Assembly (NCBI GenBank): GCA_013115145.1
Contig: JAAPAO010000189.1
Coordinates: forward strand, 1-55,819
DNA: 55,819 nucleotides
Direction: 5' to 3'
Source of the DNA: Perkinsus chesapeaki ATCC PRA-425
Taxonomy: Eukaryota; Protista; Perkinsozoa
The first letter of the stretch is position 1, and every line of letters starts with the position of its first letter. The position numbers were made by a program, and so were the translations under genes. Below the pieces are notes generated by a model, which worked only from the letters and a program-made list of their open reading frames with translations, had not been told where the DNA came from and made no database searches. This document shows, one piece after another, positions 5,572 through 55,819 of this stretch.

Positions 5572-6899
5572 TTATATTTATTCACTATTTATTATAATGT
5601 GTGTTGTGAATGTTCTTATTCTTCTTCCATTCGATGATGATGATGTTGTTGTATAGACCCACTATACCTGGTTCCTAGTTAATCAGCCAATCATTACCCG
5701 ATTAATAGTCCTGCTTATAGCATCCTTTTAGAGGATGAACCTGAACATGACCAAGTGATAACCTCGATCCACCTTAAAGAAGTGATAAACCACCTCTATC
5801 ACAATGAGCATAACCTCGATCCACCTCCAGAATTTCCAACTCGCAAAGTTAGTCGCCGTCTACGTGCGTAGCGTGGATTAAAGTGGATTGGATTTCGAGG
5901 ACATCTTCTCTTATTTTGAAGCCGGTCGCCTCCTGTCTGTTTATATGCTAAAAGGGTTTAGATAACATCGTCTCCAACTTGTTCTTCGGAGATGGTTTAA
6001 TACCTACACCATCGTTGTCGGTGAAAGAACTACATAGTGGTGGCTCTTCAGGTTCATCGTACTTATCCCAGTAGAATCGGCTTGAGCAAAGAATGGGCAG
6101 TTGACAGGTTCAGTCTAGTCATAATGAATTGTGGTGTAGGATGTCACCCGGGACAGGATGACATCATTGAAAGATGTTATGACATGAAGAGATATGTCAC
6201 CGGCCTGTCAAGATTATTGAGACTTCCTTACTTTGAGTAATGATTGTTGCCAGTGGTGATGACAGATGGCTAGTAGGAAATAATGCCCAAATAGGAACGC
6301 ACAGGTCTCTTAGTCCATACCTTGCATACCTTTATCCACCTCGATCAGCTTTGTAAAGGTTTCAGTGGATACCATTCAATTCGTATGATTATCTGTCAGA
6401 CTAGAACCAGACTCTTTCAGCCTCGGTCTGAAGGACCCTGTAGCCTCGGACACTTCGGTAGCGTTGCATCACAATTAGACGAAGTAATACTTTTAGTTTA
6501 ACCCACGGATAGAATTATGCTAGTACTGGTTGAAGATACCGGCAAATTTAAGTTCGATTCGTGCATCCCACAACAGAAAAGATTGTTTCAAGCACGAATC
6601 GTTGTAGCTGAGGGAGACCAACCTAGATTTCAATATTGGTCCGGTCACTCCCTTATAGACTGATCGACACTTTGGTCTCAATACTCCCACTGTTTTGTTC
6701 ATTGTCTCCGGAATCTTATTACTTGCAGACATTCAAAAGAAGCCAATCGAGTTAAACTTGCTCTATCTCAAAGCACAAAGGCCGATTTCCAAGCTAATCT
6801 TCAATGACCTTGAGTATCTCCCAGATAGTAAATCAAGTAAATTCGAGGTTAGCTCAACTCTGGACATTTACGATATATCCGATACTAGTTCCTTGTGTC

Positions 6900-8669
6900 A
6901 TGTTTCATAACGATGAAGATACCACCAATAACAAGCCCTCATCATCGTCTTCATCATCATCACACTGTCATGCCGCTGCCGCCGACGATACTTCCTCCCT
7001 CTTAAGTCGCCTTAACATCGTCGAGCTCACTGATTGCCAAAATTTCCCAGCCGAACACATTCGGGAGAAGCTCGCTTTGGAGGTGGTGAATATTTCCTAT
7101 TAGATATCTGCTGGTTCATTATACGGATAGGTACATCGTTATTATGATGATTACATCACTATTAAAAGGGTTGGTATCGATCCTGAAGCCGGTGGGACAA
7201 TAACTGATATTGATGCTACGTTGAACAACAACGATGGCAAGTGAGGCAACGGTCTGGGCGATTATTATAAAAATATTCTTTATTTCCATCATGTTTGAGA
7301 AGTCCATTTTCCTTTCCATTATTGATACTAGTTCAATGCAGCCTATTTCAGATCATTTCCAATCACCATAGTCTGTCAGCATCCATCATTCCTTACCTAC
7401 TCCACCACTGATAATGATGGAACACCAGTCGAAGTCTCTGATTGGGTACATCGCTCCGCTCGAGGGGGATGTTATTTTATCATCAGATTTCGACTATGTG
7501 TCCCTTTGGCGCCTCAGACGAGTGCCGAACTTTATCTGCTTTCCTACACTTTGGGCATTCAAAGTGGTGCGGGAAAAATAATAAAGAAAAGGTGAATTTC
7601 AATCTGAAAAATTTCACTCGCACTTCTCAGGACGCGCGTACCATCGAGCTGTCCCCTAAATTGTGTCGCACATCGTCTTCGCAACTTGCCGATGAGTAAG
7701 CCAACATCTAATCACTTTTGCTAAGATATTTCAGACGGTTTGCTAAAGCAAGATATCTACGGGGAGTTGGTCGACGAGCGAAGGCATTGGATGCTCTACT
7801 AGGAGTTCTAGAATTAGACCCAGATCATAGCCAAGCACAGCAAGCAAGAAAATCTTTGTCGTTGTTTCCTATATATCCTTCACAGTACTTCTCACATCTT
7901 TTCGATGAAGTTGCAGAGAGTTCGATAGAAGCACGAACTCCACCTCATCACTCTGGCGGTGCTGCATCATCTTCCTCCTCGACAACCTCGGCTTACCACC
8001 ACGCCGCTACAGCACCAGTTCACAGCAGAGCTGCTGCTGGCTCGGGTGGCATGCATAGTACCGACAAGAGTTGTTTATCTATCTACACTGGTGGTAGGTA
8101 GACGAAGCAGTAGCTCAGTTACTGGTGGCAATAGAAGTGATCAAGGGAGATCTGCTACAGTAGAGGCCTCTTCACCTGCCGATTCTGTGAGTTAGTTAAC
8201 CTTCCTCAGTCGACGATGATTTAACCCCTCCATTGAATCACCATTATTATAATTTATTTCCTAGATAGGACATTCTCCGATCTTGGTAGCGGAAATATCT
8301 TTTCCGGCTTCCTTGACATACAGGCTTTCGAATTCCCTCAGCTCCTCAATGAGGTCAAGAAGGATATCATCATTTCGCTCAAAGCTTTTGATCAGTTAAC
8401 CCCTTACTTTCAATTCACCATCACGTGCCTCGGCCAACTGAACTTCTTTACGTCCGACGACCAGCACCACTAACATTCAAGATGTGTTTTATCGCACCTC
8501 AATTGCTCAGATGCTCCTCCCAGATGATGGTCGTCCTCCACTTCCCCCCGATTCTACCACTACTGCCAGTCAGTGGAGCAGCAGGAGCACCACCCCGACA
8601 AGTGGTTGTTGTCTTTCTGATCACGATGATAATGATGATGATGTTGTTCTGGATTATTTTTATCATTAG
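6900..8669 (+). CDS. Multi-exon protein with a TPR-like motif
   Basis: Exon at ~7735 encodes FAKARYLRGVGRRAKALDALLGVLELDPDHSQAQ (TPR-like helix pair ending LELDP). Further plausible exons at ~8266-8395 and ~8480-8669; boundaries approximate. Confidence 0.5.
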
Positions 8670-8745: not shown

Positions 8746-10653
8746 TCATATTTCATCCGACAACAAATCAGATAAGGAGACAACAACGCCATCAGTTGTG
8801 ATATATGATACACTTCTAGCAGCATCGACTTTCATCTTATCATCATCGTCGTTGTCGTTGGTAGCCTTCTCATGGCTTCTTTTCACTTCTTCTTTGTCCG
8901 CCCTTTCATTTGCTTTTAGTGCATCTCCATTGCGGGTTGCTGATGGAGCCTCATGACGAGCCTTCCTTTTTTCGTAGTGTGATCTGGATGAAAGTGGGCG
9001 GATGTCACAAAGGAAAGTAGACGGCTCGGCCTGAAATGAATCTTTCCCGGAAGAAATAGAACTTGACAGAATGTAGATGTAGTTATTGATACACACTATT
9101 CCCTACCTGTAATATGTCTTCTAAATATTCGTACACCTCTCTTTGTTTTTCTTGACTATTCTGAAGATTTCTAATTAATTCCATTTCTTCCTAATAGAAG
9201 ACAACAAAGTGGATATCATTGCTGCCGCATGAATGACATAAGTACGGGTATAATGCCCCGTAATCATAGTCTAGGCATTTACTACTGCGCCCTATCCATT
9301 GCGGAAGTTCCTTATCAGGAGGACTTCATTTATGTTATAAAAACCCCCTATGAGGGAGGTATAATTCTGGCTTCGTCTTAGGAAGTTCCTATACCAGGAG
9401 TCCTATCTATCCATATTAGCTTTTTACCAAGGTAGTTGGCTTTATGTCAAATGCTGCTACCACAACTTACTCGTTCCATTGCACGGATTTCTGCTTCAGT
9501 TTTTTTCATCAAGTCCTCCTCCTTTTCGTATCGTTTCTCCATTTCACTTTGTCTCTGGGCCTGACGTTCCTCAATGAGTTTAATTCTGGCTTCATTAGCT
9601 TTGTAACTGCTCGAGAACGCCTTGCTCCAAATTAGCGTGTTGCGCGCCGTTACTGTGAACGCCTCACATATTCCCGACGCTTCCGTGCTAGCTTCATATC
9701 ATCTTCGTGCTTTTTCTCGATTATTTCCGTCATAGCCTGATACCGCTCCCTCTGCAAAGTTAACTTCTTTCAGGGTATACCCTTTTCTCATCTCGTGCTT
9801 GTCTATAAATATCTGTCTTATTGTCTTGTACTCTTTCTAACTTCTCTCTAATCCTGTATCGATTACTTTCACGTTGCTCACAGGCCTTCATACGAATAAG
9901 CTCCAATCGTTTATACTCTGAATCATCCCTGATGAACATGAAACATGGATATATAATATAATTGATTCATATTATGAATCATTAAGTAACATGTATAATA
10001 TTCATAATTCAAGATAATATAGTATTCAGCAACCTACCGACTCTAGATGGAGCACTTTCTCAGGTACTGTAGTTATGGAAATGAGATTTATCATGTCTTT
10101 AAAGCTGCATAGAGATGTGGAATTTAATCAGGTTATCTAATCGAAGTGTCGGTTCGACTTAAGAGTGATGGAAAAGCATCGCATGACATAGATAGTTTTT
10201 CCTCGATAAGTTTCAGAATCGTTCCTTGAACGATTTGACGGTCAAATTTTGACCTTTGGGTTTAAACTCACTTGTTCGCGCGTTTAAGTCTGGCTTCGGC
10301 ATTCTCACGTTTGGATCTAATTAGCTCATCAGCTCGTCTTTTTGCCTCAGATATCCTTTTTTCTGTTCTTATCTGAGATTCACCCTATTAACATCTACCA
10401 ATGTTGCGTATACAGAGTCAGCCTAGGCGATAGCTTGATTAGACAATGTTTGCTTCTTCTCCCTCACCCCTTCATTTCTAAGTAGGGCAATCCTATTGGC
10501 AAGAAGTTCGGCATCTTGTTCGAATCGTTTGCGTGCATCGATCAGTTCAGATAGAGTTCTCGTTGTTACAGCTGAGATGAGAATCCCAAGTCATTGGAGT
10601 ATCAGCGGCCTACCTGATGGAGATGAGCCCTTGGCCGGTTCAGGATAGTCCAT
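8746..10653 (-). CDS. Conserved protist-type coiled-coil protein of unknown function, multi-exon
   Basis: Hand-spliced: MDYPEPAKGSSPSAVTTRTLSELIDARKRFEQDAELLANRIALLRNEG...IRTEKRISEAKRRADELI...KKTEAEIRAMER|EEMELIRNLQNSQEKQREVYEYLEDILQ|AEPSTF...; canonical GT-AG junctions at the joins checked. Confidence 0.72.
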
Positions 10654-50757: not shown

Positions 50758-52260
50758 TGTAAGCTTACCAGTCATAACGAATGATTAGTCGGCTCCTGTT
50801 TTTTCAGGTGTTCGAGACCTTCTCAGGCAATCGGCAACACAGACAACCCCCACTTGCTATGTTAACCCCATTTTTCTATTATTTCTTGAAGACACGGTGA
50901 GCAGTGCCCGGAGCAAGAAGGCACGGCGCGCTCTCAAGTGCTCTTATAGACTAGCAGGTTTGCCGCTCTAAGTATACCGCTCTTTCTTTAGAATAGTGTC
51001 TAGTTCCAGTGTTTGCCGGGCTGGCTTAGCCACAGTAAATAACATTCGAGGCTTTATGAGTGCCGTTTTCGCGACACCTTGCTCAAGGATACCTCATTGT
51101 CGGATGACATCCGTCACATTGTCACACGCCTCCGCAAGAGTCTTATCTACGCGTTAGTGTCGCGGTCCGTGGCCCGTGGGGTACTCCGGATGAGAATGTC
51201 AGTCGGCTGAAGCGATTCGGCTCCTTCACGGGAGCTCTACCCATGTCATGAAAAGCACCCCATCTCTCCCGGTGTGGGCCGCACCCCATCTATCTGCACG
51301 CACCTCGTTGAGCAGCCAGGCTGATGCAGCTTCGGTTATGCCGCATATCTTGTTATGTTGACCGGATAACTTATGTGGAGCCCAAGGAGTTTATACCACG
51401 ACTAATAACTTGGACTGAATGTGGTTCACTGAGTAAATCTCACTTGACATAGTTCAACAAACTTCAGCTTTTATACCGCTGCACTTTATGCTTCATATTT
51501 TAAGCTCTTTACTGCATGTTTCCATCTTCGACACGTTGATGTACCGTACCGTACCTTTGTACTCAATAGGCTGTGATGACAGGAACATCAGACTCAAGAC
51601 GACAAAATGGTTCCTGTACCTAACCCAGCGCCTCATTGATAGACCCCATTTCCGAGGATACTTGAGTAACTCAAGTTGAGTTCAGTAAATAAACCCTAGC
51701 AAACTTCAAATGAAAGTCAACTTCATGTGAAAGTCAACCCCGCCGTAGGGTGGGTGTTCGACACTCAAAGGTTCGAGAAGTAACCTCCGAGAGCTCGTAA
51801 CGCTGCTATTTGACTGTGTAGCCACGGTGGCTAAGCCACCTCAGACATGAAAGCAGGAAGTGGAACACGCGGACCACTCGGTGTTGTTCCAAGTCGATCC
51901 TCACTAACAATATTCCGACTCGTAAGTTACGAGTCGTAACCAAACGTGAGTCTCGCACAATTCCTCAGCCAGTGCATATCCGTGGCCGCCTGCGCGGGTG
52001 CGAGGTCCTCCAGGAACGTTTAGAAAGTTGTTGGTTCGCGCTATTGCTCATCTTATTTATGCAAAAGGAAACTGAAAGTGATGAGATATTCCAGAGCCAG
52101 CTCCTATAATTGATACATACACCCCTACGGTTTGGCCCTTAATCCTGCCTAGCCTCCCGATCAACCGACACTGGGGTGGAGTCTAGTAGACTTGTTGTAG
52201 GATTCTGCGCAGTCTATGTGCATGCGTGCTAGAATAATCTATAGCTAAGCGGCCGGCGCG

Positions 52261-54902
52261 CACGGTAGGGCGATCGCTGCATTAAATAAATTAAAAAGTA
52301 CCAAATTATCTATGTATCATGAGGATCAAAATGAGCTATGTTTCGTGACAGGGAGTGCAGTAGTTAACGAGATACGGTCGGGCATGGGATTCCTATGTTA
52401 ACACAATAACACTATTTGGGAAAATAATAGAAACGAATAATGTTATGCGACACAGCTACTCTTCACTGTAACTGGCGCAGCTTCTGCGGGGTTTTTCACA
52501 ACTTGTCGAAGGCTCAGCTACTTGCTTGCGCTTAGTGTTGTATGTGGCTCCGAGATGAGCAATTCCATCAGCGTGTGACATGCAATTGATCATACTAACA
52601 CTCGCCTCTCTATTAATGGTTCCATGCAGAGACTCAATCACTTCCTCGGTGATTGACCAAGCAGCAATACCAGCATTTTCTAGGGTTCGAAGACTATCTA
52701 CTAGATGGTGAAGGAGTACATGGAGACTAAGTGTGACAGGTATATCCAGTTCAGCTATAGCTGTTTGGATCCTTTCAATTTCCTTACTCACTTCACTTAT
52801 CCAGTCATTTTCTTCACACCAATGACCATGCTCGCAATAGACCAGCTGTCGTACCCGACCCCAAGCAGCAATTATATCGGCAGCAGCAGCGTCAAACCCG
52901 GCAGCCTGCCACACATGTCCCGCATCACGCTGACCGGCGATCTTTGAAGCCAAAGCAGCACAATCCTTCCCTGTGAGAGAAACTGTCTTCAAGAAGGAGC
53001 GGTTTATTGCAGAAGACGATGTAGGCAGGGAAGATTTTATACCATAATTATCACTGAGAAACGACTCCACCTTCTGACGCTCTTCTTTGTTATTGACATA
53101 CTTCCCGAAGACAGCTTTAGCTAAGTTCATGCCAAGGTGAAGAACAGGACACGCGATAGCAACAAAAGGTGAGTCATCAAACTCAATGAGCGGATTATAC
53201 CGCTGGCCATTAACGTGGGACTTTCCCCGGCCCTTGTTGGTAGCAGCGAGTTCTCTGGCCCTGGCTGTAGTGCGCAAAGGTTCAGACTTGTCATAGACCA
53301 TCCGATACTTTTCGTAGCGACCTGAGCTTGTACAGTAAGGGCAGCCGGTTACCGTTAATCCAAGGACGACCTGAATCCATTTCATATCACCGCTAAGTAT
53401 GACCTGGTACTCTCGAAAGATGTCTTCAAGATCGGAAAATACCTTGACCATGCAATCACGCTTTTCAGCGATATCCCCAATACAGACCAAATACGGAGAC
53501 ACCTTGCTCCCTGTATCGTAGTGAGATACGTGGGTATTCACAGGCAATGCAAGAAGCTTGAAGAGTCCACCTCCGCTGTCGCCCGACAAGCGGAGAACGC
53601 ACTCGGATCCATACATCTCCTTCAAGTCGTCAACCAGATACTTGCCCATAGCAACCACGCCTCCTTCCAGCTCGAACGTGGTCCACTTAGACTTCTGTAG
53701 AGGTAGAGAGCTACTGCAGAGTAGCTATAGAGGAAAGCTGGCGGGCTAGGATGACTCGAATGCGCTCCAATGCATTGTTTGAGAGAGTTCCACTAGTCTG
53801 TATCTGGTTGAGGACATCGAGACTTATCGCAAGTCGAGATCTGGCAGGCCTTCCAAACTTCTGCTGATAAGTAGCAGGTTTACCATGCAGCTTGGGCATG
53901 GTGAACTCCTCACCCTTTCCAGCTCCTAATTGATTCCGGAAGGCAGAAGCACAGCTGGTGCTTACCTGCCCAGCAAGGTTTTCTTGCTGAGATGCGCCAA
54001 CCAGTACAGCATGTTTGCCCGAGGCGGACAAATCAGAGAATTGCAGAGGCTCAGAGCCCTCCGAGAAATCACAACTCAGCGTACCCTTAGGAACCATTAA
54101 CAAAACTGGCACGCTAGAGGAGCTGCCTGGGGCCGGAGTACTTGAGGCCGGGGCTTTATCACTGGAATTCCCTACACTCCCGACCTTCGGCCTACCAGAC
54201 TTTGAGCGCTTGATATTCTGCTTCTTAGACGTCATGTTGTCGCAGAAGTAACAAGCAGCACCTGTTTCTCCGTAGCAGTACGACAGGAATAACCAATTTA
54301 TTGGAACTTCTTTGCCACCTGGTATAGGTTCCTGGATACTAGATAACCGAGTCTTGATGCCACCCTTGAACCAGTCTTCAATATACTTTTTGGGGTCTTT
54401 TCCCAGGTGGATATTGCACGTGTTGCAAATCTGAGATGGAGCATTAGGGAGTTCCATCATCCTCGGTGTCTCATCTTTCCACACGAGTTCAATTCGGGCT
54501 TTTGTTGAGGCGCGCGAAGTCGGAGAGCCTTTGTTGTTATGCTGGTAGCCGCATAGGAAACAGAAGCGATCTTTGCACGGGATGCGAGGAGTCATGATGG
54601 AATAATACTTCCGAAAGCTGAGTAACAAAAAAGATTTACGCAAAACTTTGCGCGTTTTTGAAGCACTTCCCACTGGGAAGTGCTTCAAAAACTTCCCCGT
54701 GGGGAGTTCTCAGTGGGAAGTTCCCACGGAGTGTTAATTAGTGGAGCATGGAGAACACGCATTAACACAAGAATCCCATGCCCGACCGTATCTCGTTAAC
54801 TACTGCACTCCCTGTCACGAAACATAGCTCATTTTGATCCTCATGATACATAGATAATTTGGTACTTTTTAATTTATTTAATGCAGCGATCGCCCTACCG
54901 TG
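52261..54902 (-). mobile_element. Chapaev-like (CMC/Transib-RAG1-related) DNA transposon, 2642 bp
   Basis: Perfect 132-bp TIRs (52261-52392; 54771-54902) starting CACGG; CGGCGCG duplicated immediately outside both ends (52254-52260; 54903-54909); internal transposase. Confidence 0.95.
52456..54595 (-). CDS. Chapaev-like DDE transposase split over two frames (54595-53711 and ~53694-52456)
   Basis: N-terminal Zn motifs FCFLCG, APSQICNTC, CYFC. Core LRLSGDSG (D1), SGDMK (D2), CPYC, PVLHLG, LTGKDC, LHVLLHH, TEEVIESLH (E). These parallel Chapaev3 motifs WRLFIDSS, CGDLK, LPPLHIKLG, KIHFLHSH, SDEQGERFH (recalled). Confidence 0.88.
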
Positions 54903-55819
54903 CGGCGCGGTTGGTTATTCGCCTGCCCTTGGTGTGTTCTTGGTTATCACTCCTATCCCTAGCGTAAGCTAACTATCCCTCAAGGTCCCTCCTGTTGTGT
55001 TAACGCATCTGAGCCTCTAGTCCTACATCAACTAACTACTTAACCGAACCCGATAACAGACTGGTAGACTCCGTCTACTCTGCGAAGGATAGACTGGTGA
55101 CATTAGGAGTAACCCTCGAGCAGCGTCGGGTCGTACACTCGGTGTTCACAGCAGTAGACTGAGGCCTGTCTGCTTAGCATGCTAACGGAGACTGGTTCTC
55201 GTTACCTGCCTACTTGCCATCATTGATGCCGCATCAATAACGCTTGTTGTATGTTTTATTTGGCCAAGACTCCTTCAAAATACGGGAGACAGCTCTCACG
55301 ATGGGCTTGCCAAGCACTGCTCATTCGCGACAACCGTCACGACACACTGAATACCTCCGCTGGTCTTGTGGCAACACAGCGGAATCAAAACGACTCGAGC
55401 TTTCATAGACTCGGTTCTATGGAATGTTGATGGAGTATTTCTGTGTATATCGGGGCCAATCTGGACACATACTAAAAGACTTATAGTCATGAATGTCGTA
55501 TAACTAGCTTCAGCTTACGCAGCCAACATCAACATTCATACCGATCATTGAATGAGTTTCGTGTTTGACATTACGAGAAAATCACCAAGTTGAGTTGAAA
55601 ATAGGAGAAGCCTCCCCCGGTGAGGTAGCTCTGAACTCGTCTATTCTTATGGTTCACTAAAAAACGTTTCTCGATTATATGGTAACAGTTTTTCAGCAAA
55701 CGCGTTGGCCTCACTATGTCAACTCCTTTGTTGGACCATACTAAGCGTGGAGGATACTCCCTCCTGCCTGCGCACGCTGAATATTGTGATAAGTATCTTA
55801 GTGCATATCTTTGCATGAA

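Follow-up and report, generated by a model that had tools for sequence, protein, structure and literature searches.

The window examined here, a 55,819-nt contig of Perkinsus chesapeaki (an alveolate protist that parasitises clams), carries a DNA transposon of 2642 bp, which spans 52261-54902 on the forward strand from CAC to GTG. When counted from these termini, the two arms are identical over exactly 132 nt (132/132 positions) and diverge thereafter, identity over 141 nt being 98.6%. The left terminal inverted repeat, on the plus strand at 52261-52392, opens with CACGGTA GGG and contains an A-run at positions 33-37, while its counterpart on the minus strand at 54771-54902 ends …CCGTG. The terminal 20-mer occurs twice in the window, once at each end, with no occurrences expected from shuffles. 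The 7-mer CGGCGCG lies directly against both element ends, at 52254-52260 and at 54903-54909, and was assigned as the target-site duplication by alignment of the ends and by its single copy at an unfilled site, described below. The identical arms and the abutting 7-mer had been reported in a preliminary description of this DNA, and alignment of the arms confirmed both, with correct coordinates.

With CAC and GTG as the ends, an exact abutting direct repeat exists only at lengths of 2 and 7 bp. Complementarity of the arms reaches 2 nt beyond CAC/GTG (CG/CG), which makes a 5-bp duplication (GGCGC) or a 3-bp duplication (GCG) formally possible as well. In our judgement the element probably ends in CAC within a genuine 7-bp duplication, as a young, single cut-and-paste copy of the RAG1/Transib/Chapaev group.

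The transposase gene and its kind

The element contains a single gene, on the minus strand, which is read as two frames. The N-terminal frame (54595-53714, 294 aa, closed by a stop codon at 53713-53711) is Cys-rich and zinc-finger-like over residues ~1-130, followed by a linker and a pre-catalytic region; it shares 53% identity with residues 1-287 of P0006, an uninterrupted 727-aa protein of P. olseni. The C-terminal frame (53700-52459, 414 aa), which was assigned from its motifs and its homology to P0006 and holds the catalytic core, is 54-56% identical to residues ~300-718 of the same protein. Both frames also align to P0033, a P. olseni protein of 730 aa.

The frame break between them, at 53711-53718, was located from the stop codon and from comparison with relatives. 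The junction reads …SSIATLQ-stop, where four P. olseni relatives continue into a conserved PSK… segment; about 11 residues that are coding in the relatives are missing from the window, and the downstream frame is shifted. Logan contigs from four DNA runs and two samples were mapped onto 50900-55819 (run X1 is from one sample, runs X2 and X3 are from the second). An X1 contig covering 52363-54800 showed zero differences from the window, and the break is thus not an assembly error, while a variant contig of the second sample, which differs from the window at 6 of 132 nt, continues across the break point as …SSIATLPSKAQL and is intact there. Judged from these sequences, the transposase gene of the window copy is probably damaged, and the copy hence non-autonomous. 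It could be envisaged instead that the gene is unbroken and the copy autonomous, a short intron removing the stop, since removal of a 61-nt GT…AG interval (53755-53695) would give back a single frame of more than 650 codons. This is improbable, however, as such an intron would delete residues that are conserved in the relatives, the region being continuously coding, PSK… segment included, in all four P. olseni proteins, and as the second-sample variant reads straight through the site; the RNA runs searched contained next to none of the locus. A tiny intron of 19-20 nt at the stop was rejected for its wrong phase or non-GT start. The GenBank model P0001 (FOL47_002986, a partial protein), 100% identical to the element reading frame, was likewise rejected, as it avoids the stop by splicing out about 95 residues conserved in relatives.

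The C-terminal frame carries the residues D41, D106, C121-x2-C124, H327/H331/H332 and E352/E353 (numbered within the 414-aa frame), in the motifs DSGGG, GDMK…GL…CPYC, HVLLHH and EEVIESLH, and the alignment of the family gives the order DxGGG, GDxK…GL…CxxC, PxLH, HxxxH(H) and EExxExxH. By these D, D, C(2)C, H(3)HH and E motifs the gene encodes a DDE transposase; the signature D-D-C(2)C-H(3-4)H-E is that of EnSpm, Mirage, Chapaev, Transib and RAG1 (PMC12730594). An AlphaFold model of the intact relative P0006, confident only in its core, had the RAG1 core as its best match (Foldseek E 2.6e-9; Z 16.2 over 346 residues, RAG1 460-972), at 14% identity, followed by BbRAGL (Z 13.4), the P element transposase (13.3), HzTransib (11.5) and Hermes (7.6). 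The likeness to a RAG1 core is thereby found at the level of the fold, with no sequence-level match. Neither reading frame nor any of the relatives, those of Aedes (below) excepted, matched a Pfam family, RAG1_RNase_H included, and single-sequence and profile searches of the PDB returned nothing for the core.

A phmmer search over 1.8 billion representatives gave only 16 clusters at E<=0.001, composed of Perkinsus proteins, a few fragments on environmental contigs and an Aedes albopictus group (E 5e-5), and a profile search of a collection of 5.8 billion added only Perkinsus proteins. The Aedes proteins have a sub-threshold match to DUF1280 in Pfam. In the ESM Atlas the nearest clusters (0.97) were unnamed cnidarian and poriferan proteins of ~700 aa, and lower-ranked clusters bore RAG1_RNase_H or DUF1280. 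For the N-terminal 135 residues, the nearest named look-alikes in the Atlas were RAG1_imp_bd clusters (score 0.88, 173-185 shared features), which we treat as a lead only; no Pfam HMM match was found for this domain, and a ZAD-like CxxC…CxxC match was weak (E 0.17). On the ends, the motifs, the modelled fold and the N-terminal look-alikes, the element is assigned to the RAG1/Transib/Chapaev (CMCT) neighbourhood. Its architecture is Chapaev-like, with a putative N-terminal zinc domain joined to the core, and the family is Perkinsus-centred and poorly populated. The preliminary description had placed the element in the same neighbourhood, and its view is supported by these four lines.

P0024, the Aedes albopictus-type homologue, was found as an identical 542-aa protein on nine Logan contigs from nine runs (L009-L017), which had been fetched as an animal control, and no inverted repeats surrounded it on any of the nine; instead of a mobile copy it may represent a transcript, or else a gene that has been domesticated or become fixed. 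In the stretch that separates the start codon of the window gene from the right inverted repeat lies a perfect palindrome with 19-nt arms and GGGAAGT repeats (54654-54692), for which a role as promoter or subterminal binding site would be a guess. The palindrome and three GGGAAGT-type repeats together occupy 54654-54721, and a variant contig in the second sample (S2) is without 54 nt of this region (54667-54720).

An unfilled site within a dispersed repeat

Contigs of both samples (X1, X2 and X3) join position 52260 straight to GTTGGTTAT-CGCCTGCCC…, a sequence that equals the right flank except for one missing T. The reciprocal loose end was also found, with GCTAAGCGGC directly before 54903, and a contig of a second, more diverged paralogue again has one CGGCGCG and then continues into other sequence. 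A site without the element, carrying CGGCGCG once, thus exists, and may be either the allele or a paralogous copy of a host repeat. The preliminary description had predicted an empty site of this form. As the unfilled site holds a single CGGCGCG, the DNA added is the element plus 7 bp.

The sequence that received the element is a dispersed host repeat, whose flanking parts (about 52192-52260 and 54910-55058) are covered, in each of the four DNA runs, some 5-12 times as deeply as unique sequence. Its left part beyond the duplication (52192-52253, edge approximate) was delimited by a word depth 5-10 times that of unique flank and by contig breaks at 52191-52211, and its right part (54910-55058, edge likewise approximate) by a depth of ~1400 against ~115 and contig breaks at 55029-55058. 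With the insertion removed the repeat is ~200 nt long, and at least two diverged paralogues were seen as contigs; no further copy was found in the window or the other DNA examined, and the repeat is not tRNA-derived. Repeat sequence, at 6-15 times depth and with several alternative continuations, also occupies the last ~160 nt of the window (55656-55819), and is probably why the assembly ends there.

In X1 the contig of the left junction and inverted repeat had a depth of 225, against 115 for unique flank and 122 for the element interior. The inverted repeat is thus present at about twice the depth of the flank, as expected for once per arm, and the genome holds one copy of these exact ends. 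The preliminary description had proposed that the flanks of many copies be tabulated, which this copy number makes impossible for the exact family; the remaining P. chesapeaki copies (L001 and L002) are old remnants that each retain a single end. A recent insertion is supported by the lack of any mismatch between the 132-nt arms and by the finding of sites that have not been filled. Of the recent activity proposed earlier, the young insertion therefore stands, whereas the transposase frame of the window copy is broken at 53711-53718.

A further X1 contig, of 6591 nt, holds a ~90% identical derivative composed of a repeat arm, 33 nt, a second repeat arm and a 5' coding fragment, which matches the window at 52276-52344, from 54780 onward and at 54483-54570. 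It is possibly a miniature, internally deleted member of the family elsewhere in the genome.

Relatives and the length of the duplication

The DNA of related elements was retrieved with homologous proteins as handles, and four complete elements were obtained. The P. olseni element that encodes P0033 (L006, 2724-5427) has perfect 127-nt arms and a 6-bp duplication, CGCCCG. An element of a distant clade in P. chesapeaki itself, encoding P0013 (L005, 80-2462), has 157-nt arms of 94% identity and a 5-bp duplication, CGCCG. The other two lie on eukaryote contigs from ENA metagenomes: L007 (2398-6025), with 59-nt arms of 92% identity and the 6-bp duplication CGAGTG, and L008 (3024-7685), with arms of ~85% identity and the pair TGATCG/TGATTG, which is 6 bp with one CpG-type mismatch. 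Single ends were found at five more loci, two of them in the P0013-like clade (L018, …CGACG|CAC; L019, GTG|CGACG…), which are unrelated loci with DNA only 66% identical, one left end in P. olseni (L003, …CGAGCG|CAC), and two in P. chesapeaki (L001, GTG|CGCACG…; L002, …GTAGCG|CAC).

In every complete element a direct repeat, exact in all but one case (5/6), directly abuts CAC/GTG, and the CAC…GTG termini are kept in L003, L005, L006, L007, L008, L018 and L019. Alignment of the first 40 nt of five family members gave a common heptamer and A-run, CAC[GA]G[TG][AG]GGG and an A-run at 33-39, separated by a stretch that varies. The length of the duplication is 6 (L006) and 7 (window) in the clade of the window, with two single ends compatible with 6, and the P0013-like clade is consistent with a 5-bp CGNCG. 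From these sequences the lineage appears to make duplications of 5-7 bp bounded by CG (or TG), and not a fixed 7. The earlier suggestion that 7 bp might be a hallmark of a new clade is thus not upheld, with 6 bp in the closest complete relative (L006), 5 bp in the second Perkinsus clade and 6 bp in both environmental elements.

Ends were missing or incomplete at three loci: L004 is element interior without ends, in L018 the outermost 60 nt of the right end are gone, and L021 has no recognisable end. Several observations were made beside the elements. At 8001-10746 in L001 (P. chesapeaki JAAPAO010000284.1), the protein that GenBank names 'Thymus-specific serine protease' (P0003) comes from a chimeric gene model, of which the N-terminal half is Peptidase_S28 and the C-terminal half a relic of the transposase family of the window. 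On the 2-Mb contig of L007 (ENA ERZ25766962) a gene product at 10407-10627, 4 kb from the element, matches Pfam RAG1_RNase_H, and this genome seems to hold several RAG1-superfamily elements. A DDE_3 (Tc1/mariner-type) gene adjoining the Chapaev-like relic of L018 (P. olseni JABANP010000268.1) is enclosed by inverted repeats of 342 nt that are 99% identical (5630-5970 and 7247-7588).

Several points weigh against CAC ends with a 7-bp duplication. The exact family offers one insertion only, the 7-mer starts and ends with CG, and the same sequence fits G-CAC…GTG-C with a 5-bp duplication or CG-CAC…GTG-CG with a 3-bp one. Next to CAC, G is present at 11/11 Perkinsus-family termini and CG at 10/11, a constancy for which a conserved terminal nucleotide and a preference in the target are equally good explanations. 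That the ends are cut at CAC, with the proposed stagger, would moreover follow from RAG1 and Transib biochemistry by analogy. In addition, the X1 depths (111 at the empty site, 115 in unique flank and 122 in the element interior) do not add up as two alleles; as they fit no two-allele model and the flanks are a dispersed repeat, the empty sites are probably paralogous and not allelic, and the actual target could have differed slightly.

The relatives nevertheless bear on each of the other parses. In L007, CAC is preceded on the left by TG in place of CG, and this TG recurs at the end of the right-hand copy, as expected from a 6-bp duplication but not from a conserved CG terminus. Were CG or G counted into the element, the duplications would become 3, 2, 1 and 2-4 bp, and a separate rule would be needed, namely a target in which identical letters border the duplication. 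Both RAG1 and Transib cut precisely at CAC. Thus it is unlikely that the true ends are CG-CAC…GTG-CG, with an inverted repeat of 134 nt and a 3-bp GCG duplication as an ordinary Chapaev-type footprint, even though complementarity extends exactly 2 nt past CAC, CG abuts CAC/GTG at 10 of the 11 termini and the published Chapaev length is 3-4 bp (PMC4079192). On that parse the duplication would shrink to 2 bp (CC) in L006 and to a single base (C) in L005, the exact direct repeats of 5-6 bp in these two elements would have to be put down to repeated coincidence, and the TG of L007 would stand against it, as would the description of CAC as an invariable terminus (PMC4079192) and the cutting at CAC.

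A Transib-typical duplication of 5 bp, either with ends G-CAC…GTG-C (GGCGC) or with a stray donor-flank CG at one end (CGGCG or GCGCG), would agree with the 5-bp CGNCG of the other Perkinsus clade and with the Transib hallmark (PMC1131882), as well as with the G that abuts CAC at every one of the 11 termini, and the unfilled site fits any split a+b+t=7. This parse would, however, require in L006 a 4-bp duplication or an odd, asymmetric 1-nt end, and in L007 4 bp, while the asymmetric extra CG is ad hoc, with no data calling for it; we regard it as quite unlikely. There is next to no chance that only a 2-bp CG was duplicated, a caveat raised in the preliminary description, and that the remaining similarity of the 7-mers is local GC-rich low complexity. 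CG/CG does abut both element ends, but such a duplication would have left CGGCG-CG-GCGCG at the unfilled site, where both samples and the second paralogue have one CGGCGCG, and it is impossible in L007, which has TG/CG; the unfilled site thereby refutes it. CAC ends with a 7-bp duplication are therefore favoured, on account of the TG pattern in L007, the published invariance of CAC and the cleavage of RAG1 and Transib at CAC.

A possible mechanism and comparison with known systems

In the mechanism envisaged here, a transposase dimer would bind the two identical ends through a heptamer-like CACGGTA, a spacer of ~25 nt and the A-run, similar to Transib ends or recombination signal sequences, and excision would occur exactly at CAC, by analogy with RAG1 and Transib. 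Strand transfer would then link the two 3'-OH ends to phosphates of opposite target strands that are separated by 7 bp, each phosphate lying immediately 5' of a CpG, and gap repair would give the CGGCGCG duplication. The stagger of 5-7 bp would be set by the family, or perhaps by the site, and the window copy may have been moved by a transposase acting in trans, or its gene may have been damaged just after insertion. A bolder proposal, which we hold with considerably more doubt than confidence, is that of a Perkinsozoa-centred sister lineage of Chapaev/Transib in which CpG recognition on each target strand, and not a rigid protein spacing, sets the spacing of strand transfer, so that the length floats between 5 and 7 bp (CG-N1-3-CG). 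If true, this would represent a different geometry of target capture within the RAG1 superfamily.

How far apart the two active sites lie on bent target DNA is reflected, within the RAG1/Transib/Chapaev group, in the duplication length, which also serves as a hallmark in classification. The Perkinsus family keeps the CAC ends and the GC-rich targets yet has duplications of 5, 6 and 7 bp, which suggests that length is an unreliable hallmark beyond animals. The intact P. olseni transposases of 727-730 aa with perfect inverted repeats offer natural variants for studying the stagger in RAG-like transpososomes. The element also documents recent movement of a DNA transposon in Perkinsus, where few mobile elements are described in the literature searched, and no paper linking Perkinsus with Chapaev was found in that literature.

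Published duplications are 3-4 bp for Chapaev and TWA for Chapaev3, with CAC as the invariable end (PMC4079192), 5 bp in GC-rich targets for Transib, whose ends consist of a heptamer, a 23-bp spacer and a nonamer (PMC1131882), 2-5 bp for the CMCT clade as a whole (PMC12730594), and 5, 3 and 2 bp among Nozomi-related Transibs (bioRxiv 10.64898/2026.08.26.747230). Lengths of 6 and 7 bp are thus outside the published lengths found for the CMCT group, and the earlier claim that 7 bp exceeds the known range agrees with this literature. The element is nonetheless of a known kind; duplications of 5-7 bp widen the range of 2-5 bp without establishing a new kind of element, and the gain is incremental.

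With Chapaev and Chapaev3 (Kapitonov & Jurka 2007; PMC4079192, PMC4411706) the window element shares the CAC…GTG ends and the catalytic motif set; its Cys-rich N-terminal domain has RAG1 N-terminal clusters as nearest named look-alikes, Chapaev itself being characterised by a 'Chapa' zinc domain in common with the RAG1 N-terminus, and the nearest Atlas clusters of its protein are cnidarian and poriferan, from phyla where Chapaev is common. In contrast, its duplication is 7 bp, and those of its relatives 5-6 bp, against 3-4 bp in Chapaev (TWA in Chapaev3), a 3-bp parse being obtained only with CG counted into the element. The targets of the family are GC-rich and CpG-bounded, its inverted repeats are very long (127-157 nt), its host is an alveolate protist, and the sole animal homologues found, those of Aedes, are only marginally similar (E 5e-5).

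Likeness to Transib/HzTransib (PMC1131882; PDB 6PQR) is seen in the GC-rich targets, the RAG1-like fold and the sister Perkinsus clade with its 5-bp CGNCG (CGCCG in L005, CGACG flanking L018 and L019), and perhaps in the family ends with their CACGGTR heptamer-like motif and an A-run ~25 nt further in. The window copy, however, has 7 bp and not 5, possesses a putative N-terminal zinc domain, of a kind absent from canonical Transib, and encodes a transposase that does not match Pfam RAG1_RNase_H; the Z of 11.5 for HzTransib is lower than the 16.2 for RAG1. The RAG1 core and ProtoRAG (BbRAGL) provide the best structural match and the same order of catalytic and zinc-binding motifs. Unlike ProtoRAG, the element has one pair of transposase reading frames on one strand and no RAG2-like partner gene, and its two ends are identical, in contrast to asymmetric 12/23 ends, with only 14% identity in the core.

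The Nozomi-related Transibs resemble the Perkinsus family in that the length of the duplication drifts between closely related transposases of the superfamily. In those Transibs, however, the lengths fall (5, 3, 2) and the ends change to G, whereas in Perkinsus the lengths rise (5, 6, 7) and CAC is kept.

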